Assembly: GCF_001194135.2 (NCBI RefSeq)
Contig: NC_068981.1
Span: 132,334,217 to 132,398,216, forward strand
Direction: 5' to 3'
Length of the DNA stretch: 64,000 nt
Source: Octopus bimaculoides
Taxonomy: Eukaryota
A model generated the notes under the pieces. The model was not told the DNA's origin, ran no database searches, and was given only the letters and a program-made list of their open reading frames with translations. How positions within the stretch are numbered: position 1 is the stretch's first letter; the number at the start of each line of letters is the position of its first letter. A program made the translations under genes and the position numbers. Shown piece by piece: positions 15,355-63,954 of this stretch.

Positions 15355-15737
15355 CTAATGGATGTTTTCAGGATTGTTAAAAGCACTTGAATCTTGTGTT
15401 CTTTCTGCATGACTGGGCAGAACCTCCCACTGGTCACCAGGATTAAGAGAAGAGGACGAAGAGGATGATGTATCCCAGTTCAGGCCATCTGAAATGTCGT
15501 GTGCATTTACAGCCATAGTGTTGCTGTCGGAAATCAAGTTTGCTGAGGAATCTAGAGATGATGTCATTACATCATGTGACACTTCTGGCATGGATGCTGT
15601 GGGCTGTTGATTACTAGTACTGACTGGCACAGCTGAAGACCGATGGCGAAGATTAGAGTTGTCTACAAAACTTCTGGGTGTCATTGATGATACAGCATCA
15701 GCAAGTCCTCCTAAAAGTTCAACATTTTCGTTTGTAC
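15355..15737 (-). CDS. LDAF1: LDAF1 terminal coding exon (S/T-rich, contains DQWEVL)
   Basis: ttctgttttccAG acceptor, phase 1, 383 nt to the stop, matches ORF 15355..15786. Confidence 0.75.
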
Positions 15738-17056
15738 CTGGAAAACAGAATTTTTTTTTTAAAGCAATAAAAAAAAAAAAACTCATAATTTACATTTAGA
15801 AATTGTTTGTATATCATTCATCAAATAAACTACTTGCAAATATGGCTGTATGGCCACATTGTGGTACCTTGGATAAAACCTGAGAATGAAATTTGTATGT
15901 CAAAAATTGCACTGAAGTCTGTCTAATACATATAGATTTTGGTTTCCAAGTGGCTTCAATGCCATGGTTCAGTAGTAGAATTCCTTCTTTTATTAGTTAT
16001 GGTGTTTTTGCAGGGCAAGTTGTCAGATATAGTACTATTATTAATAATGCTAATAAATTTTTGGATAGAATAAATAAACTGTTAAGATATTTAGTAAAAC
16101 AAGGGTATAGATATAGTAAATTGGTTAAAACTTTTAATCGCTGTTTAGGTGGGACACTTGAAATATTAAATATGGGGTAGTATCTAGTCTTCAACTTACC
16201 AAAGATTTGTAAAGATTTGGAATGTTTACGATTTAAGTTATTTGCTTATTACATCACCAATATTGTTTGAGACAATTGAGGAAGTAGTAATTACATACTA
16301 CGTTATCTAGAGATAAGATGGTCTTTTAAATTCTAGAGGTGATGGAACCATGTGGTTTGAAAAAACATGTAAGTATTAATACTTTAAAGTTTTAATTTAG
16401 CTTTAATTGTAGCAACGTTTTATAATAATAGTTAATTACAAGTATACTTTTATTAGTTCTTATTTAATAAATTTAATGTTTCTATTAGTTAGTGGTAAGT
16501 TTACATTAAAGCTTGTAAGGGTAATATATATTAATGAGTGTGTAGTGTTTTTATTATTAACTTCTGAATTATGAAATAATGTATTTCACTCATTATTATA
16601 TTATTCATTAAATTAAATTCAATCGTGTTTTGTTTTGGAGAGAATTGAAATAAAGCTTTCGTTTTTTTTTTTTTTATTATAGTAGTAACTATGGAAGACT
16701 GGTGGGATTATTATTTGTATGGACTATTAATACCGACACAAATCATCATCATCATACATAGATTTATGTGTTTCTTTGTTGTAGTTTAATTTTAAAGCGT
16801 TTAATCCTGCCTATATTTAGATTGAATGAATGTGGTTATTAAGCTTTCACTTTTATATTATACTATGGAAGACTGTAAGGAATAAAATATATGATCTAAA
16901 GGTTTGATTGCTGTTTAGTTACATATTTAGGAGTTGGTTATAGATTTATTTATTGAATTTATTTATCGATACTGTTGTACACAGGGGAAATATACAGATA
17001 GTTTATTCTGTTCATGCTATTATATTAGCATTATCATGCGTTTGAGAATAAATTAT

Positions 17057-17099
<43 letters not shown>

Positions 17100-20000
17100 T
17101 ATAGATATAGGGCAGGGAATTGCCAATTAGTTAATAAAATTAATAATTAACAATTTTGCCAAGTAGTTCAGTATGCAAAAAAACCTTTATTGGTAAAACA
17201 TTTATAATTATAAACATATAGGGATCAGCATGAGTTGCTTCACCAACATACTGAAAATTTAGAAATAGCAGTCAAAGAACTACTAATTCTAACTACAATT
17301 TTTTCTCTCCAATGGATGGCGATATTTACGGCACACATAGAACAAAACAGAAGAGAAAACAAAAACAAACTTGCTGTTAGTTAATCATGTACGACGTTTC
17401 GTGATTGGAGAGAAAAAATTGTAGTTAGAATTAGTAGTTCTTTGACTGCTATTTCTAAATTTTCAGTATGTTGGTGAAGCAACTCATGCTGATCCCTATA
17501 TGTTTATATATATATATATATATATGTGGTAATCTGAAACCATATGAATGGTCATGCCATGGACAAGTTTAGGAAGGACCTGATAAAGATCTTCAAAGAA
17601 TTTGGTCTATCTATAATGGTCTCCACCATATTTGACAAAAATCGACTTTCTGGGTTTAACTCCTGACTTGAAGACAGGCAAGTACTACCTTTACGGGAAG
17701 CCCAATGGGGAATCTGTGTATATCTATCCCCACCCAGCTCTAATTGGATACTTAGTCACAAGCACAAATAGAAGAATCTATAGACTATCAGCAGATAGGG
17801 AGATCTTCAACAGGGTTGCTCCCACCCATTATATACAGGCATTAGTGAATAATGGATTCACTGAGAAGTTAGTATACATGGAGGATACCCACCACCACCA
17901 TCTGAACCTGAAGAGAGTCACGAAGAGAAAATTAATCTAGTTTAATCCTCCATTTAACCTAGAAGTTTCAACCAACACAGCTAGGAGCTTCCTGATGCTA
18001 ATCAAGAAACACTTTCCTAGAATCCAAAAGAATTATAAACTTTTCATCTCCTACAGTGTTGAGGTTAGTTACTTCTGCTTAGACAACACCACTTCTAACA
18101 TTGCATGCTACAATAGATGCAAACACACCTAAACTGCCAATGTACACCCCAACCTGTAACTCCAGAATCCTACCAACTTCCTGCTGGAAGGATCCTGCTT
18201 CATAAGGTCAGTGGTCTATAGAGCCACCTTCACATCATCTGGTAGCATTACAACACACTACATGGACATGACAACTAATGACTTCAAGGGAAAGTTACAC
18301 AGCATATGTACTCCTTCAGTGGATAAAATGCCAGTAAATACTTTGTGGAACTTCCGACTGCAATGCTGAACTAGGTGCCAGGTACCATGCATCAGTCTAC
18401 ACTTGATCCAGGGTTGTAGCTCAGTAAAAGAGACGAGTAGTGGGAAAAGGTGAGTCTGACAAACAGGGAACACACTTAATCGCCATCAAGAAAGCACTGG
18501 AGATGTCATAGCCTCAGCACATGTCAGTGCATCATCAGCCATGGCATGCCCAATCCTCCATTCAGTGGGGTTGACAACAAATGGAGTACCTGACCACTGG
18601 TATGTGTCTCTTCAACAGAAAGCAGAAGAGTATGCACTCCAATTTAGTTAGATGTAAATTGAGGCAAGGTACAATGATCAAGTGGTTGTATATAACAGAG
18701 GTGATATATGCATTTGCCACTTCTCAACCTTTCAGAGATGGTTTTCTCTCGGACCATTTCTGGGTGAGACTAGCTACCCTGCTCGTCACCTCATCCCAGT
18801 TCTTCTCCACTTGGAGATCCAGACTAAATCAGACTCCAAGCAATTTAACAGGTCCTTCTGTCCAGCGTCCCACATTATTGGAACTTCTTCAAGTTCCAAG
18901 TTACAGGCTCAATGACTTTTTCTTGGTTAATTTTTGCTCCTGTCATTTCCTCATGCTCTTTTAGAGCACAAGGCCAGCAGTTTTTTTTTTTGTTTTTTGT
19001 AAGGGAGGGAGTAAGCTAATTACAATGACTCCAGTGCTGAACTGGTACTTATTTTATCGACTCTGAAAAAAATGAAAGGTAAAGTTGACCTTGGTGAAAT
19101 TTGAACTCAGAATGTAGAGACAGACAAAATGTTACAAAGCATTTTGTTCAGCGTGCTAATTCTGCCAGCTCGCCACCATGTTGTTGTTGTTTGATGATGA
19201 TAATGGATGATGATGACGATGATGATGATGGTGATAATAAACTACAGTGTTTACTCACTTGGGATTTGGCTTTCAGTGGGTGTATCACGCCTGGCTAACA
19301 TTTCATGGTCCAGTTCAGTATTTGACACTGATTGTGACTGATTTGATTCTATAATGTTCTCCACATTATTTGCCTGGTTATTTGCTGACAGCCCAACTGG
19401 AGTTGAAGTTAATACAGTATTTCGGGTCGGAGAAGTGGATGTCAGATTTTCAACAGGGACTGATGATGTACCTGATGGTGCAAGCTGTGAAGCCAGCGAT
19501 GGATAGATTGTATTTGTTGGTGAGCTTGTGATAACAGGATTGTTATCTGAAGTGGAATTGTCTGGCTGAGATGGTGGAGCTGATGGAGGAGATGGTGGGT
19601 CTGATGGCGGAGATGGTGGTGGAGCTGATGAAGCAGTATGTTGTTGCTGTTGTTGGTAGTTGTGAGCATGCTGGAACTGCTGATGAAAACGATTGAAGAC
19701 ATCAATACTTTTATGAAAGACGAATAAACCAACTGCCACTGAGAGACTGAAGACAATTGACAATACACCCATAAGAATGAGTACTCCTCCTAAGATGATA
19801 GTTGCGAATGTTAGGACAGTACCTGAAAATTAATAGGAAAAAAATAAAAATGTAATCAGTGAAGCCAAAGTATTTAAGTAATAAAGCAGAACAATTTCAA
19901 ATCATTTTTTAGTAGCTATTCTCTATCTCAAAAAGTAATGTGATAAAGATTTTCAAGAGCCACCGAGGTTTGTAAAGTAAGTGTTTAGCTTTGGATTCAG

Positions 20001-22928
20001 TAATGTTAAGAGGATAAGAGAAGAATTTGCCTCTCAATAAAATAGCAGTGGATAAATAGGTAAAGTTCCTGTAAAACATGGTACATATTCCTTCCTGCTA
20101 TATGAATTGAGTCATATTGAAGTAATTGTCTCATACAGATATCTACCACAATATCTTCAGTGGAAACGAGCAAACAGATGGTATGATATCTATTCAGAAA
20201 TAACACCTCTAGTAAGTAGAAATCTAATTTCAAATCTTAAAACAAATATTTATTTTGCATACTTTCATTGATTATGCAACATAATCACAATATTTCACTT
20301 TTATACTTCAGTTCACAATTCACAAGAATTTAAAACAGAAACTCTCTTTAGTAATGATTATGGTTAGCTTGAACAATTAGCATCAATACAGATTTCATAA
20401 CATAAGATTCAAAAGTAGCATATCTAAGATAACCTAGATGTCTACATTCACTGATCAGATGTATATTTCAGATTTAGCAAAATTGGGATAATTTTCTATT
20501 ATAACTTTTGATTTTAAAATATAGAAATTAAATTTTCATTTCAATAAATAAAATACACAAGAAGGAAAGTTTATGAAACCTAAAATTAGATTCCTTTGAG
20601 CACAAAATTAACTAAAAGATTAACAGTGTATTGTGTGTAAGAGGGTGAAAGTTCATTACATTTACATGTTTGGAAATGTAAACTATATTAGAAATTTCTA
20701 GAACTGTATCTGAACCTATGTGATAAATGCTAAAAGCCATAATATACTTCTGAATTATTTAAAAGATATGATTTCAAAGGACTAAATTTAGTATGTTATC
20801 TGGCAGCTATATCTAATAAGATAGCTATTGCCTATACAACAAACAGAGAAAATGATGTTTTTACATAATATTCTGTCTGCAACCATTATACTTATCAATC
20901 TGAATAATTTCAATACTATCTGAAAAAAGTTATTTGAACAAAATCAGATGATGTCATCTGTGCACAATCACATGCAATACCTGCTTGTGATTCATTGAAT
21001 CCTGTGCTGATGTTTTGTTCAGGATTGTCACTTGACATGGCTTGAGGACATCTGGTCAGCAATTGGAACTGTTCCATTAAATATCGTTCCAGAGAAGAAA
21101 TGCTGTATTCAGAGCCTGTGAGTCATAGTGTAGAAGGGAGTAGAGTTAGGAGAAAGTCAAATTAATTCAGTGCAGTTACAGCCTAAGTTAAAACACAGGA
21201 GAAATTATTCTTAGACAGTGCCAAAATAAAGTGATGAAACAACAGAAAAAAAAATAAGGCTCATTATCTACAACTTAAAGGCACAAACTAGTGTATTTAC
21301 ATATGTAGTCTTTATCAACTTATTAACTGTTGGATATAATTTCTGTTATATCCTCTGGGATGAGGTTTCATTAATATAAAATATATATTACACTTTTCTT
21401 CAAAACCGCTTTTGATTGACTGTATCAGGAACAGTTAAATCACTGGCTATCTTCATATTGTTTATAAGACAAAACTAATAACTACTTGGTGAGAATGATT
21501 TAGGTATATAGTACATACTATTTGTTACTAGTCATAATAGCACATCACCTGGAGGCAACTAAAGATTCAATAAGTTACAGTTTGGGAAAGCAAATAATTC
21601 TGAAACATCATGCAACAAAATGTAACTATAACATATTATTTCTATGACTCATATCCTTACATAAGATATTTCCTTTTTTTTTTATTAATAATAATACAGT
21701 TAGAGGAGGAAGAGCAGCACTATGAGAATTTTACTGTAAAGCCTTTGAGACAGGTAGGAGGTAAATATAGAAAGAACAAAGTCTCATCAACTGCTACAGT
21801 AGGAAGCATCACTTAAACTATTAAGCTATCCTCAAACCTCATTCAAATATTTGTAACCGAACTCATTCTGCCTTCCAAAGGCTATATGTGAAAATAGAAT
21901 AGTTGTCCTCATTATTGATACAATATTGGGTTTACAATGCAGATATAAGTTGAACATATTTGTACAACACCAAATTTTTATCATTTCACTGAATGATATT
22001 TGAAATCTTTCTTTATGAGTCATTCATTCAATTTTATCTGAAAGGATTCAATTGCAGTATTGTATATGATAAAGCCATTTGATATTTTCCTGTTAGCTTG
22101 GGGTTTCATTTCACTGTCATTTTTTCTCTTTTATTATCTGTTCAGCCACAAGGCAAGTATGGGGTGATGAAATTTAGAGCCTTGCCCTCAACACAATACA
22201 ACACAACACTGTGCCAGCAGAGATACAAATTCACAAGTCTTCAGCCTAGAGCAGTGATTCTCAATCTTTTGTAATTTCATGGCAGACAGAAGATCAAATA
22301 AAATTATTGGTGCACTTTGAGCATTAAAAAAAAAAAAAAAAAAAAAAAAATTAGATTTTAACATTAAATATCTAGAATATATACAAAACAATTGTGTTAT
22401 TTAATCACTCATACTTATGCATAACAAAATTATGAATAACACTACAATGGATTTAGCAAAGCTTTAAACCATATTTGAAAAAAATCTTTGGTACACCTAG
22501 GTATCTGCTGTGATCCATCAGTGTGCCATGATGTACCATTTTGGAATCACTGGTCTAAAGGCTTACCTATTTAGAGTAATTCATTGTACAAAAGCAAGCA
22601 TCACAGTTGCTAAACATGCATCAATCTAGACATTGCTTTCTAAAAAAAAATATAACATGACTTGAATAAAAATGAAGGAGAGTTAAAGATACTTACCTTC
22701 AAGAAACATAAACCCACCAAATGTAAGGAAAATACTGAAAAGTGTAAAGGCAAAGAAACAGGCAACAGGCACACTGCATAATACAATAGTAAAAATTCCA
22801 AACATTGTGATGAAAGGATGGTTGGCTGCAAATGTTTTTAGCTTCTCCAAGCGGTTAGTAAGGTCAAAGTTTTCAACCAGATCTTGATAAATGTGGGAGA
22901 GAATTGTGCTGAAGCTTTCATTCTCCAT
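15355..22928 (-). CDS. LDAF1: Lipid droplet assembly factor 1 / promethin (TMEM159)-like, ~392 aa; complement(join(15355..15737,19259..19822,22697..22928))
   Basis: HPFITMFGIFTIVLCSVPVACFFAFTLFSIFLTFGGFMFLE/GTVLTFATIILGGVLILMGVLSIVFSLSVAVG matches the promethin pattern (HPF...VP..FF......LEG....GG..LL). In-frame stops lie upstream of ATG 22928. GT-AG introns are phase 1-1 and the total of 1179 nt is in frame. Confidence 0.85.
15950..16190 (+). mobile_element. Penelope-like retroelement fragment (RT thumb region)
   Basis: MPWFSSRIPSFISYGVFAGQVVRY...F..R...L...L.KQGY.Y..L...F matches the PLE pattern FP.LSSNIP....YGV..SQL.RY. Confidence 0.7.
17061..17100. repeat. (TA)n microsatellite; many other (TA)n, (TG)n, (GA)n and (ATC)n tracts occur across the window
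   Basis: Directly visible. Confidence 0.9.
17209..17508. repeat. perfect 105-bp inverted repeat with 90-bp spacer (MITE-like)
   Basis: 17209-17313 is the exact reverse complement of 17404-17508; embedded in TA-rich flanks. Confidence 0.9.
17530..18480 (+). mobile_element. decayed Penelope-like retroelement (RT C-terminus plus GIY-YIG endonuclease)
   Basis: MDKFRKDLIKIFKEFGL..KIDFLGLT.DL.TGKYY.Y.KPN, NRRI.RLS..REIFN...Y..AL...GF, then I*FNPPFN.EVSTN....FL.LI.KHFP and SVVYRA motifs; frameshifts and stops present. Confidence 0.85.
18490..18930 (-). mobile_element. Tx1/L1-clade LINE ORF2 fragment
   Basis: Minus frame WTEGPVKLLGV*FSLDLQVEKNWDEV..RV.....W.ERKPSLKG*EVA..YI...KLE..LF.FL....P.VR.SICCQ..GGLGMP; interrupted. 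Confidence 0.75.
19259..19822 (-). CDS. LDAF1: LDAF1 coding exon 2 (second hydrophobic segment plus Q/P/S/T-rich region)
   Basis: ttttcAG acceptor, CCAA/gtgagt donor, 564 nt open frame. Confidence 0.85.
20981..21115 (-). CDS. candidate symmetric cassette exon of LDAF1 (GSEYSISSLERYLMEQFQLLTRCPQAMSSDNPEQNISTGFNESQA)
   Basis: Pyrimidine tract + cacAG acceptor, GCAG/gtatt donor, 135 nt, phase 1-1, no stops. Confidence 0.45.
22697..22928 (-). CDS. LDAF1: LDAF1 coding exon 1 (exon begins at 22965 with 5'UTR)
   Basis: ttttacAG acceptor at 22966-22967, GAAG/gtaagt donor, first hydrophobic hairpin. Confidence 0.88.
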
Positions 22929-27589: not shown

Positions 27590-28250
27590 GACCATGTTTG
27601 GATGGTGCTTTTTACGTGCCACCGGCATGGGGAGCCAGTCAGGCAGCTCTGGCAGCAACCTACGTATGAATGGTGCTTACTGCATGCTACCAGTACTGGT
27701 AATGGCCACAATAACAATTTCCATTTGATTTGATTTTGATTTACTTGACTCAATAGGTCTCCTGAAGCACAGCATGTTGCCTGACGATTCAAAGGTACTT
27801 TTTAAATGGGCTGGTTATGCGATACTGGTGTAGGCTACGTCTGTGATCTCACTTTCCTTGCCGGGTCTTCTCAATCACAGCATACCTTCAGAGGTCTCGG
27901 CCTTTTGTCATTGCCTCTGTGAGGCCCAACGTTCAAAGATCATGCTTCACTACCTCATCCCATGTCTTCCTGAGTCTCCCTCTTCCATGGGTTCCTCCCA
28001 CTGTTAGAGTGTGATACTTCTTCAAACAGCTCTCCTCATCCATACATGGCACATGCCCATACCAGCGCAGTCGTCTCTGTTGCACACCACATCTGATGCT
28101 TCTTATGCCCAACATTTCTCTCAGGGGGCTTACATCCTGTTGTGCGTGCAGACTGACATTACACATCTAGCAGATCATACTAGCTTCATTTCTTTCAAGT
28201 CTACGCATGTCTTCAGCAGTCACAGCACCTGTTTCACTGCCGCGTAGCAA
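27590..28250 (-). mobile_element. RTE-clade LINE 3' fragment (related pieces ~34630-35065, ~60770-61330)
   Basis: IRCGVQQRRLRWYGHV..M.E.SC.KK...L.V.G..GRGR.RKTW.EVVK.DL is the typical RTE ORF C-terminus. Confidence 0.85.
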
Positions 28251-31797: not shown

Positions 31798-32607
31798 NNN
31801 NNNNNNNNNNNNNNNNNNNNNNNNNNNNNNNNNNNNNNNNNNNNNNNNNNNNNNNNNNNNNNNNNNNNNNNNNNNNNNNNNNNNNNNNNNNNNNNNNNNN
31901 NNNNNNNNNNNNNNNNNNNNNNNNNNNNNNNNNNNNNNNNNNNNNNNNNNNNNNNNNNNNNNNNNNNNNNNNNNNNNNNNNNNNNNNNNNNNNNNNNNNN
32001 NNNNNNNNNNNNNNNNNNNNNNNNNNNNNNNNNNNNNNNNNNNNNNNNNNNNNNNNNNNNNNNNNNNNNNNNNNNNNNNNNNNNNNNNNNNNNNNNNNNN
32101 NNNNNNNNNNNNNNNNNNNNNNNNNNNNNNNNNNNNNNNNNNNNNNNNNNNNNNNNNNNNNNNNNNNNNNNNNNNNNNNNNNNNNNNNNNNNNNNNNNNN
32201 NNNNNNNNNNNNNNNNNNNNNNNNNNNNNNNNNNNNNNNNNNNNNNNNNNNNNNNNNNNNNNNNNNNNNNNNNNNNNNNNNNNNNNNNNNNNNNNNNNNN
32301 NNNNNNNNNNNNNNNNNNNNNNNNNNNNNNNNNNNNNNNNNNNNNNNNNNNNNNNNNNNNNNNNNNNNNNNNNNNNNNNNNNNNNNNNNNNNNNNNNNNN
32401 NNNNNNNNNNNNNNNNNNNNNNNNNNNNNNNNNNNNNNNNNNNNNNNNNNNNNNNNNNNNNNNNNNNNNNNNNNNNNNNNNNNNNNNNNNNNNNNNNNNN
32501 NNNNNNNNNNNNNNNNNNNNNNNNNNNNNNNNNNNNNNNNNNNNNNNNNNNNNNNNNNNNNNNNNNNNNNNNNNNNNNNNNNNNNNNNNNNNNNNNNNNN
32601 NNNNNNN
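31798..32607. other. assembly gap (others: 33744-34123, 38385-38735, 41891-42393, 50680-50689, 52919-53607, 62409-62418, 63237-63661)
   Basis: Runs of N; all long X-rich ORFs in the track are artefacts of these. Confidence 1.
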
Positions 32608-33631: not shown

Positions 33632-34208
33632 ATGTATATGTTTATGCGTCTGTGTTTGTCCCCCCACCATCACTTGACAACTGAGGCTGGTGTATTTATG
33701 TCTCTGTAACTTAGCGGTTCGGCAAGAGACCGACAGAATAAGTNNNNNNNNNNNNNNNNNNNNNNNNNNNNNNNNNNNNNNNNNNNNNNNNNNNNNNNNN
33801 NNNNNNNNNNNNNNNNNNNNNNNNNNNNNNNNNNNNNNNNNNNNNNNNNNNNNNNNNNNNNNNNNNNNNNNNNNNNNNNNNNNNNNNNNNNNNNNNNNNN
33901 NNNNNNNNNNNNNNNNNNNNNNNNNNNNNNNNNNNNNNNNNNNNNNNNNNNNNNNNNNNNNNNNNNNNNNNNNNNNNNNNNNNNNNNNNNNNNNNNNNNN
34001 NNNNNNNNNNNNNNNNNNNNNNNNNNNNNNNNNNNNNNNNNNNNNNNNNNNNNNNNNNNNNNNNNNNNNNNNNNNNNNNNNNNNNNNNNNNNNNNNNNNN
34101 NNNNNNNNNNNNNNNNNNNNNNNATAATATAGGATAAATTCTTTATAAAAACCTCATAATGAAAAATTTCGTAATGAAAAAATTCATCGTTTCTTCATAG
34201 ATATATTT

Positions 34209-36206: not shown

Positions 36207-60069
<23,863 letters not shown>

Positions 60070-62457: not shown

Positions 62458-63954
62458 GGTGAGTGATGATAATGATGATGATATTGGTGGTTTCAAAACT
62501 GGGACACAAGTGACAATAATAGTCTATTGCTGCATTCTTTTAAATGGATGTAGAATTCACTTTCACTGTACAATGGCAGGAAAGATTATTCATATTCACA
62601 CCAACATATATTTATGCAAATTGGCTTCTAATTTTCTACGCACGACTGTGTAGTTATGAAGTCTGGTTCTCAACTGTATGGTTTCAGATTCAGCTCCAAT
62701 ATGTGTCACCTGGGGTAAGTGGATTCTCTTACACTTGGGCCATCCGCAGCCTTCTGTGTGAATTTGGGTGACAGAAACCAAAAGAAGCCTGTCTTATCAT
62801 ATTCCTCATCATTTTAAAGTCCACTTCTCCATGCTTGCATGGCTCAGGCATAGTTTATTGAAGCAGATTATCCATGGCCTGTATGCCCTTCCTGATGTCA
62901 ACCTTCTCCCATTTCCAAGCCAGGTAACACATCCTCATAGTTTCACAAAATATTGGGGAAATGAATGACTGCTTCTATGATAGTGACACTCATTTACAAC
63001 TATCACACTATGCCACAACACAAAGAGCCACACACACACACACACACACACATGTATGAACACACACACACACACACACACTCGCACTCACTCACTCACA
63101 ATGGAGATCTTTCAGTTTCCATTACCAAATTCACTCACATGGCTTTGGCTGGGGCTATAGTAGAAGGCAGTAGAACCTAGTTAATAACTGAACAAGATTC
63201 ACTTACAGACCATTTCTGACAAATATATTCAGTTAANNNNNNNNNNNNNNNNNNNNNNNNNNNNNNNNNNNNNNNNNNNNNNNNNNNNNNNNNNNNNNNN
63301 NNNNNNNNNNNNNNNNNNNNNNNNNNNNNNNNNNNNNNNNNNNNNNNNNNNNNNNNNNNNNNNNNNNNNNNNNNNNNNNNNNNNNNNNNNNNNNNNNNNN
63401 NNNNNNNNNNNNNNNNNNNNNNNNNNNNNNNNNNNNNNNNNNNNNNNNNNNNNNNNNNNNNNNNNNNNNNNNNNNNNNNNNNNNNNNNNNNNNNNNNNNN
63501 NNNNNNNNNNNNNNNNNNNNNNNNNNNNNNNNNNNNNNNNNNNNNNNNNNNNNNNNNNNNNNNNNNNNNNNNNNNNNNNNNNNNNNNNNNNNNNNNNNNN
63601 NNNNNNNNNNNNNNNNNNNNNNNNNNNNNNNNNNNNNNNNNNNNNNNNNNNNNNNNNNNNNAAAAAAAAAAAAAAAAAAAAAAAAAAGAACATGTCACTA
63701 ACCTTTACTTACTGAAATGAATGAAATGCCAATATGTGTAGGTAGCTGCAACAGTTTGCTGTCTCTTGAGAATGTAAATAACTGCAATACTATCTCTCTG
63801 AAATTTAAGATAACATAAAATATTTAAAACAGTTGAGTTATGACATAAAATTCAAGTCAGATAAATTATGAATTTGAATCAAACTGCTTTGATCCATACA
63901 TGTAACTCCCAATAAATTGGTTGAGTGCCCTTCTTTCGCTTGTCTACTCACTCC

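Follow-up and report, generated by a model that had tools for sequence, protein, structure and literature searches.

An LDAF1/promethin gene with a long tail

A gene of the LDAF1/promethin family lies on the minus strand of the 64,000-nucleotide stretch of Octopus bimaculoides DNA analysed here (contig NC_068981.1, forward-strand positions 132,334,217 to 132,398,216; termed the window). LDAF1/promethin is a hairpin protein that works with seipin at lipid droplet (LD) nucleation sites and later moves onto the droplet surface. The octopus gene encodes the hairpins of the family followed by a long tail, predicted to be disordered. Near the end of this tail sits a 28-residue island that is conserved between octopods and cuttlefish and includes a putative LC3-interacting region (LIR), the short motif that binds proteins of the ATG8 family. 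We regard the anatomy of the gene as described here (its family, gene model and tail) as close to certain.

Three exons with GT-AG introns (22928-22697, 19822-19259 and 15737-15355) yield a 392-amino-acid (aa) protein with the reading frame kept. Coding exon 1 (22697..22928, on the minus strand as are all features of the gene given below) starts with an ATG at 22928 that is preceded by an in-frame stop six codons upstream. It encodes the N-terminal helix and the first hairpin (aa 1-77) and ends in phase 1 at the donor GAAG/GTAAGT. Coding exon 2 (19259..19822), bounded by an AG acceptor at 19822 and a GTGAGT donor past 19259, carries the second hairpin (to about aa 114) and then the first 151 residues of the tail, including QQQQQ, PPPSPPSDPPSPPSAPPS and S/T/N-rich sequence. 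The order along this exon is second hydrophobic hairpin, QQQQQ, SSAPPPSPPSDPPSPPSAPPS and S/T/N-rich sequence. Intron 2 (15738..19258; 3.5 kb, GT-AG) is AT-rich and contains repeats, among them a 114-nt inverted repeat. Coding exon 3 (15355..15737) supplies the final 127 residues of the tail and the stop codon (15357-15355), and an Octopus genomic fragment (P0006) spans the same exon. The interval 15355-19822, to which a sequence-only reading of this DNA had assigned the gene, holds exons 2 and 3; coding exon 1 (22928-22697) and a cassette exon (21115-20981) fall outside it.

The family identity proposed in the sequence-only reading is borne out by a match to the Pfam Promethin model (PF16015) at aa 16-114, which scores 55.8 bits where the cut-off is 27 (E=4.6e-15) and covers positions 5-103 of the profile's 106. 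In the DNA this domain (19713..22883) is split between exon 1 (22883-22697) and exon 2 (19822-19713). Members of the promethin family have a central hydrophobic double hairpin of ~76 aa between hydrophilic N- and C-terminal parts (PMC6468817), and hydropathy and modelled helices both reveal this central double hairpin in the octopus protein. Specifically, hydropathy exceeds 1.6 solely in 19-residue windows that start at aa 33-99, corresponding to a hydrophobic region at aa ~33-117. An AlphaFold2 (AF2) model places helices within residues 3-141, among them 38-75 and 80-141 with a break at aa 76-79.

When the whole genome was searched in six frames with the Pfam model, this gene was recovered through its exon 1 (PF16015 match at G000:C1:132356854-132357102), along with three other places. 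The latter were considered as paralogues and rejected, as they are translations of poly-Ile/Leu/Val microsatellites. The gene is the sole credible promethin in this genome. Its nearest non-cephalopod relatives are the LDAF1/promethin proteins of Haliotis, Lottia, Solemya, Liolophura, Pinctada, Mizuhopecten and Mya (148-253 aa); those of Haliotis, Lottia and Mya already carry the annotation LDAF1 or promethin. LDAF1/promethin has a single orthologue in coleoid cephalopods, which is this gene. It shares with the known family members (human TMEM159, Drosophila CG32803) the PF16015 domain, the central double hydrophobic segment and the single copy. It differs from them in the length of the protein (392-437 aa, compared with 148-253 aa in other molluscs), in a tryptophan-containing island that is not present in other promethins and, in octopods, in a cassette exon between the hairpins.

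In RefSeq, the orthologues of O. sinensis and A. hians go under the name 'cell wall protein RBR3' and that of O. bimaculoides under 'uncharacterized protein DDB_G0283357'. It is evidently the low-complexity tail that gave rise to these names, which take no account of the Promethin domain. Genes so named on composition alone are cephalopod LDAF1.

The island is encoded in exon 3, and its place in a promethin depends on the junction between positions 19259 and 15737. The donor (AA/GTGAGT) and the acceptor (TTTTCCAG/GT) are both canonical, and the frame is preserved. The spliced 392-aa product is 100% identical to RefSeq XP_014787407.1 (Octopus bimaculoides) across all 392 aa; this junction is therefore the annotated one. 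The same exon architecture recurs in four independently annotated octopod genomes. Furthermore, cuttlefish contigs of 2.7-2.9 kb, which are mRNA-sized and come from many runs, carry an uninterrupted 404-aa coding sequence from the hairpins through DQWEVLP (contigs with the full open reading frame are listed in 53 collection blocks; 24 contigs were read). A second decapodiform-like transcript likewise carries an open reading frame with tail and motif. The joining of the last exon to the promethin exons, as the sequence-only reading had it, thus agrees with the annotated models of four octopod species and with the continuity of the homologous cuttlefish region in mRNA-sized contigs.

These observations bear on an artefactual origin of the finding, in which gene prediction has attached exon 3 wrongly, or constraint on the nucleotides preserves the island as an RNA-editing duplex or regulatory element. 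In favour of a mis-joined exon, the junction in O. bimaculoides is known here from splice signals and gene models, and the transcript evidence consists of decapodiform sequences. A tail-truncated isoform is also possible. Read-through of the octopus exon-2 donor (19251-19258) meets a stop after two codons (...QIPSE, then stop), giving a 267-aa protein, and the Sepia contigs P0015 and P0017 end in ...SPEEGQ and a stop, with an exon boundary that is positionally homologous to that in octopus. These two contigs may be unspliced forms or genomic reads. When the donor is left unused, the resulting 267-aa form keeps most of the disordered tail and is without the conserved island, so that an isoform retaining intron 2 is a possible point of regulation. 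Against a mis-joined exon stand the canonical splice sites with the frame kept, the same architecture in four octopod annotations, and the whole reading frame in mRNA-sized cuttlefish contigs and in the second decapodiform transcript.

A further isoform arises from the alternative cassette exon of 135 nt (20981..21115), which has AG/GT flanks and adds 45 aa (SEYSISSLERYLMEQFQLLTRCPQAMSSDNPEQNISTGFNESQAG; SEYSISSLERYLMEQFQLLTRC...ESQAG) while preserving the frame. The insertion falls exactly between the two hydrophobic hairpins and produces the 437-aa isoform X1 (XP_014787405.1). The exon is kept in O. sinensis X1 and in Argonauta (P0003). None was seen among the recovered cuttlefish transcripts, and a Pfam scan of the exon gave no match.

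A conserved island in a diverging tail

The tail comprises residues 116-392 (277 aa) of the octopus protein, is composed to 55% of S, T, P, N and Q, and has a net charge of -20. It lacks a hydrophobic segment, its top 19-residue hydropathy being 0.58. In the AF2 model, which was built from a shallow alignment of three sequences and serves for the tail only as a proxy for disorder, the predicted local distance difference test (pLDDT) score is below 50 at residues 138-364 and 368-392, with a small bump at 365-367. Composition, hydropathy and pLDDT thus agree with the disordered tail of ~270 aa proposed from the sequence. The polyglutamine said to follow the hairpins is present as a modest run of five residues (QQQQQ) only.

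To place this tail within the family, we used a profile search of 1.84 billion representative proteins that recovered 88 promethins. Sequence following the hydrophobic region amounts to 229-289 aa in cephalopods, whereas in the 62 near-full-length promethins from other organisms its median is 40 aa and it reaches 78 aa at most. A long tail was not found in any non-cephalopod promethin of that search, including those of seven non-cephalopod molluscs. Because only the cephalopod entries are long-tailed, the extension is a cephalopod innovation, which these sequences show for coleoids. The resulting architecture is new for the LDAF1 family, and its likeness to receptors for autophagy of the endoplasmic reticulum (ER-phagy) is one of layout, not homology. 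Between octopus and cuttlefish, length, composition and negative charge of the tail are kept while its sequence diverges; octopod tails carry a net charge of -20 to -22, decapodiform tails one of -10 to -11.

One short motif outside the island is a PSAP tetrapeptide (19575-19586, aa 157-160) in a proline-rich stretch, which we take to be of the P[ST]AP type, the late-domain motif bound by TSG101 of the endosomal sorting complex required for transport I (ESCRT-I). It is kept in O. sinensis and Argonauta and is replaced by PSSP or PSPP in decapodiforms. Given this alteration, the PSAP motif is probably compositional. If the protein moves onto the monolayer of the droplet as other promethins do (PMC6468817), the tail as a whole would lie on the cytosolic side.

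Conservation was assessed among Octopus (three species and one fragment), Argonauta, Sepiidae and one decapodiform-like transcript. The relatives of the O. bimaculoides protein are those of O. sinensis (97% identity) and O. vulgaris (full-length), an exon-3 fragment from a further Octopus, and Argonauta hians (57%). The decapodiform sequences are a Sepiidae cluster of full-length proteins (including Acanthosepion pharaonis and many transcript contigs) and the second decapodiform-like transcript, which is 5′-truncated with an open frame of 354 aa. A profile search for further cephalopods added P0023 only and yielded no sequence from squid or Nautilus. The exon-3 peptide alone, when used as a query for further species, gave zero matches, probably because such fragments sit in clusters represented by full-length proteins.

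When octopus and cuttlefish are compared, identity is 82% in the promethin part, falls to 23% in the tail from residue 126 to 345, returns to 82% at residues 346-373 and drops to 5% past residue 373. The block at aa 346-373 (15415..15498; D-I-S-D-G-L-N-W-D-T-S7-L-N-P-G-D-Q-W-E-V-L-P) is the conserved island, with the consensus D.SD.LNW[DE][ST]SSSS[ST]SSLNP[GA]DQWE[VL]LP. The 23 identities among its 28 residues, set against the background of 23%, have a binomial probability of 7e-11, or ~2e-8 after correction for the number of windows. Both tryptophans of the tail (W353 and W369) lie within it. A search of the octopus genome for a second copy of the island gave the self-match only. Comparison with related cephalopods had been suggested as a way to learn whether DQWEVL stays constant within a tail that otherwise diverges; the pattern holds across Octopus, Argonauta and the two decapodiform sequences, and this attempt at refutation failed.

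Over 26 codons of the island (aa 348-373), octopus differs from the two decapodiform sequences by 10-13 synonymous changes. Such free divergence at synonymous sites indicates selection on the peptide rather than on an RNA or DNA element, and conservation at the nucleotide level, whether for RNA editing or as a regulatory element, was rejected on this ground. Together with the splicing evidence given above, this leaves the artefactual explanation largely refuted, and we consider it very improbable. The conservation of the island implies that this patch of the protein has a function; that the function is ATG8 binding is not thereby shown.

The island contains three short elements. DQWEVL (aa 367-372) maps exactly to 15435-15418 and contains the core W369-E-V-L372 with D367 upstream (15418..15435); the second decapodiform sequence has DQWELL. 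The sequence-only reading had given these coordinates for the longer string PGDQWEVL, which would start at 15441. Upstream lies the run of seven serines that it had also reported near the end of the protein (aa 356-362, exon 3; 15448..15468), which reads SSSS[ST]SS in all species and offers candidate phospho-acceptors upstream of the W-x-x-L core. Further upstream is L-N-W-D (aa 351-354; 15472..15483), which is L-N-W-E in decapodiforms. This element resembles a W-acidic motif, with Leu at position p-2 relative to the tryptophan and an acidic residue at p+1.

The serine run also bears on annotation in decapodiforms. The genome-predicted protein CAE1306138.1 of Acanthosepion pharaonis (P0012) reads into ...SSSSSTLKIFFYH..., and the transcripts L001-L004 have ...SSSSSTSSLNPGDQWEVLP instead. 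It follows from this mismatch that decapodiforms have an additional intron within the serine run and that the deposited cuttlefish model misses the last exon, which bears the motif.

A second, small island in the tail is L-R-H-R (aa 295-298; 15640..15651). All five cephalopod sequences conform to [ST].LR[HQ]R with a Ser within the next two residues. This arrangement would fit an Arg-based (hydrophobic-R-x-R) signal for ER retrieval by coat protein complex I (COPI), with masking of the 14-3-3 type through a phosphorylated serine, or a basophilic kinase site.

Candidate partners of the island

A canonical LIR is a Theta-x-x-Gamma core that lies within a disordered region and has acidic or phosphorylatable residues at its flanks. 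W369-E-V-L372 provides such a core ([W/F/Y]-x-x-[L/I/V]) within a disordered region, and its flanks carry D367, E370 and S356-362, which are invariant or conservatively replaced in the five sequences. Across species the core varies only at X2, a tolerant position, where V is exchanged for L. LIRs of known receptors include the validated YEVL of FUNDC1, FEEL of TEX264 and DDFELLD of FAM134B, and the octopus WEVL shares x-E-V-L with the first of these. Organellophagy receptors combine a module for membrane anchoring with a net-negative disordered region and a LIR, and the cephalopod proteins have the same layout, with a membrane anchor, a disordered region of net charge -10 to -22 and a distant motif. 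In one study of such receptors, a SEC62 LIR was functional at a distance of at least 28 residues from the membrane and non-functional at 10; the motif tryptophan of the cephalopod proteins lies 211-268 residues away from the hairpin.

Several observations weigh against a LIR. Short motifs of this kind arise by chance, as the sequence-only reading had cautioned: Wxx[LIV] occurs in 28% of shuffled tails, and the combination with an upstream acidic residue in 8%. At such frequencies the motif in a single sequence is weak evidence, and it is conservation that lifts it above chance. The stricter xLIR pattern, [ADEFGLPRSK][DEGMSTV][WFY][DEILQTV][ADEFHIKLMPSTV][ILV], is unmatched in the tail, as Q368 at position -1 is not among the permitted residues; many validated LIRs do not match it either. 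The LIR-like motif with receptor layout that had been noticed in the sequence stands on the canonical definition and falls outside the stricter one. In addition, the conserved block is three times the length of a LIR, and its second invariant tryptophan, in the L-N-W-[DE] context, is not explained by one. Other promethins have no similar island, and outside yeast, where the partner is Vac8 and not Atg8, the family is without independent support for a role in autophagy. The dependence of the octopus junction on splice signals and gene models, noted above, counts on the same side.

A C-terminal LIR-like motif as a general feature of promethins was also considered and rejected, since only 3 of the 62 near-full-length non-cephalopod proteins have [DEST]..Wxx[LIV] in the tail. 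One of these matches (P0087) and a second match in P0033 adjoin the hydrophobic core. A C-terminal W-x-x-[IV] after an acidic residue was observed in the scallop Mizuhopecten (P0033, ...LPDWATIHKECK; DWATI) and in the chiton Liolophura (P0029, ...QAVEWLSVI; VEWLSVI). Because five other molluscs do not have this ending, the two cases are probably due to chance.

The upstream tryptophan is accounted for by a different proposal, in which the island is a bipartite W-acidic motif (LNW[DE] and QWE) that would recruit and activate kinesin-1 through the tetratricopeptide repeats (TPR) of kinesin light chain (KLC). Coleoid LDAF1 would then be a motor adaptor that transports or positions droplets or ER subdomains along microtubules. 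In W-acidic motifs a tryptophan is flanked by D/E in disordered regions of adaptors, and the TPR binds the Leu at p-2 of the SKIP peptide TNLEWDDSAI. The cephalopod sequence L351-N-W353-D/E354 keeps the Leu at p-2, the tryptophan and the acidic p+1 in five of five sequences, and a second W-E follows 16 residues downstream, just as kinesin adaptors often carry two W-acidic motifs. The invariance of the upstream tryptophan is thereby explained, which a LIR does not achieve. Acidic residues on both sides of the tryptophan are nevertheless absent: both copies have N or Q, not D/E, at p-1, N-W-D/E and Q-W-E being acidic C-terminally only, and T/S takes the place of an acidic residue at p+2 of the motif. 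A Leu or Met at p-2 is present for L351-N-W353 in all species and missing from D367-Q-W369, where D takes its place. Binding to KLC also leaves the invariant L372-P373 unexplained. On balance, we find kinesin-1 recruitment an improbable account of the island as a whole.

The unexplained parts of the block raise the possibility that the island serves another partner, such as COPI (by way of Trp-based motifs for delta-COP), scaffolds of the FIP200/Atg11 type only, VAP or a cephalopod-specific factor, and that its likeness to a LIR is coincidental. Conservation of the 28 residues as a unit is in keeping with this view, and SD.L and SSLNP fit no single known motif class. Tryptophans in an acidic or serine-rich disordered context are used by several trafficking machineries, and the small LR[HQ]R-plus-Ser island, which we take to resemble an Arg-based COPI/14-3-3-type signal, would point to trafficking control. 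No specific known motif, on the other hand, fits better than the LIR core. The motif reported for delta-COP is W-x(1-6)-[WF], and the spacing of 15 residues between the two tryptophans of the island exceeds it. Relatives of the island that might suggest a partner are lacking elsewhere in the octopus genome. A different partner is, on these sequence features, somewhat unlikely but has to be taken seriously.

The tail could also work through its bulk physics, as a charged disordered brush for spacing, crowding or membrane remodelling at sites of droplet nucleation, with the island acting as a regulatory phospho-switch or degron and not as a motif of a receptor. Length, composition and negative charge of the tail are conserved and its sequence is not, the serine run is invariant, and the negatively charged disordered regions found in organellophagy receptors can fragment organelles independently of the LIR. 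In contrast, two Trp, Leu and Pro do not vary in the peptide while synonymous sites change freely, a pattern that marks a specific binding interface. Bulk properties would therefore be quite unlikely to explain the island.

Our best single guess for the island is a phospho-regulated binding site for the ATG8 family and possibly for FIP200 too, a tentative proposal that we draw from its sequence. In this mechanism, W369 and L372 would fill the two hydrophobic pockets of ATG8, and D367, E370 and phosphorylated serines 356-362 would add negative charge and so tighten binding. ATG8, and perhaps FIP200, would thus be bound once the serine run is phosphorylated. Owing to the length of the acidic disordered region, the motif could reach a phagophore from the surface of the ER or of an LD. 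The protein would then be a built-in selective-autophagy receptor that tags LDAF1-marked ER subdomains or droplets for autophagosomes and lysosomal turnover, in a manner analogous to FAM134B and TEX264 on the ER and to the Ldo16-Vac8 tether on droplets in yeast. If the island also engages kinesin-1 via LNW[DE], it might constitute a dual switch between transport and degradation.

Remainder of the window and relation to known systems

The inverted repeat in intron 2 consists of two 114-nt arms (17200-17313 and 17404-17517) that are 97% complementary, are separated by a 90-nt spacer and have (TA)n flanks, and may be a hairpin-forming element or one resembling a miniature inverted-repeat transposable element (MITE). 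An open reading frame fragment on the minus strand (27936-28166; ...RRLRWYGHVPCMDEESCLKK...GRGRLRKTWDEVVKHDL) has no Pfam match and resembles the C-terminal region of reverse-transcriptase reading frames of the long interspersed nuclear element (LINE) type. The Pfam scan of intronic and flanking open reading frames gave no meaningful match, and no other convincing protein-coding exon was seen among the open reading frames of at least 95 aa in the window. Microsatellites of the CA, TA and ATC types are abundant throughout. Runs of N, 351-810 bases long, form six assembly gaps at 31798-32607, 33744-34123, 38385-38735, 41891-42393, 52919-53607 and 63237-63661, and there are two further gaps of 10 bases.

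Among known systems, FAM134B/RETREG1, TEX264, SEC62 and FUNDC1 have a similar layout, namely a hairpin or transmembrane anchor, a net-negative disordered region and a distal LIR with acidic or phosphorylatable flanks; FAM134B is also hairpin-anchored, like the octopus protein. There is no homology between these receptors and the octopus protein, however, whose conserved block is longer than a LIR and includes a second tryptophan, and the likeness described here is one of sequence layout only. The W-acidic kinesin-1 adaptors SKIP, calsyntenin-1 and nesprin-2 have in common with it a tryptophan followed by an acidic residue, a Leu at p-2, a disordered tail and two W-[DE] copies. They differ from it in that p-1 and p+2 of the octopus sequence are non-acidic and its second copy is without Leu or Met at p-2. 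Spartin (SPG20), a LIR-bearing droplet protein that is reported to link LDs to the core autophagy machinery, matches the proposed role as a droplet-localised, LIR-based lipophagy receptor. Unlike LDAF1, spartin is a soluble, peripherally bound protein of an unrelated family, and it is neither an ER-to-droplet hairpin protein nor a partner of seipin.

A functional parallel within the family is Ldo16 of yeast, a putative LDAF1 homologue and seipin partner whose C-terminal disordered region docks LDs to vacuolar Vac8 (vCLIP) and is needed for lipophagy. Both proteins have a hydrophobic anchor, which is N-terminal in Ldo16, and a C-terminal disordered region. Ldo16 differs in having Vac8 as its partner, in serving microautophagy, in having no Atg8 interaction or LIR and in the shortness of its disordered region. 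No sequence similarity was detected between the octopus and Ldo16 tails, and none was expected; the relation, as far as these features go, is one of analogy and not of membership. Among the papers searched, none links LDAF1 to a LIR, TMEM159 and LC3 co-occurring incidentally only. The statement in the sequence-only reading that no description of such a coupling was known thus holds for the LIR itself; lipophagy through the disordered tail of an LDAF1-type protein is not a new idea, as the disordered region of Ldo16 already docks droplets for this purpose.

Little is understood of how animals select lipid droplets for autophagy, and in yeast an analogue of LDAF1 tethers droplets by its disordered tail. 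To our knowledge, no animal LDAF1 has so far been linked to degradation. Coleoid LDAF1 may have been turned into a selective-autophagy receptor through its acidic tail and a phospho-regulated LIR, linking droplet birth sites or droplets to phagophores, and would then represent an independent, ATG8-based reinvention of the Ldo16-Vac8 system. This scenario is suggested by the features of the sequence and is, in our estimate, rather doubtful at present. An LDAF1 with a constrained LIR-like module would be a compact object for experiments, as it can be mutated at W369/L372, at W353 and in the serine run and can be transplanted to mammalian cells. Should the LIR reading fail, the island would still be a clean short linear motif that is conserved between both coleoid superorders.

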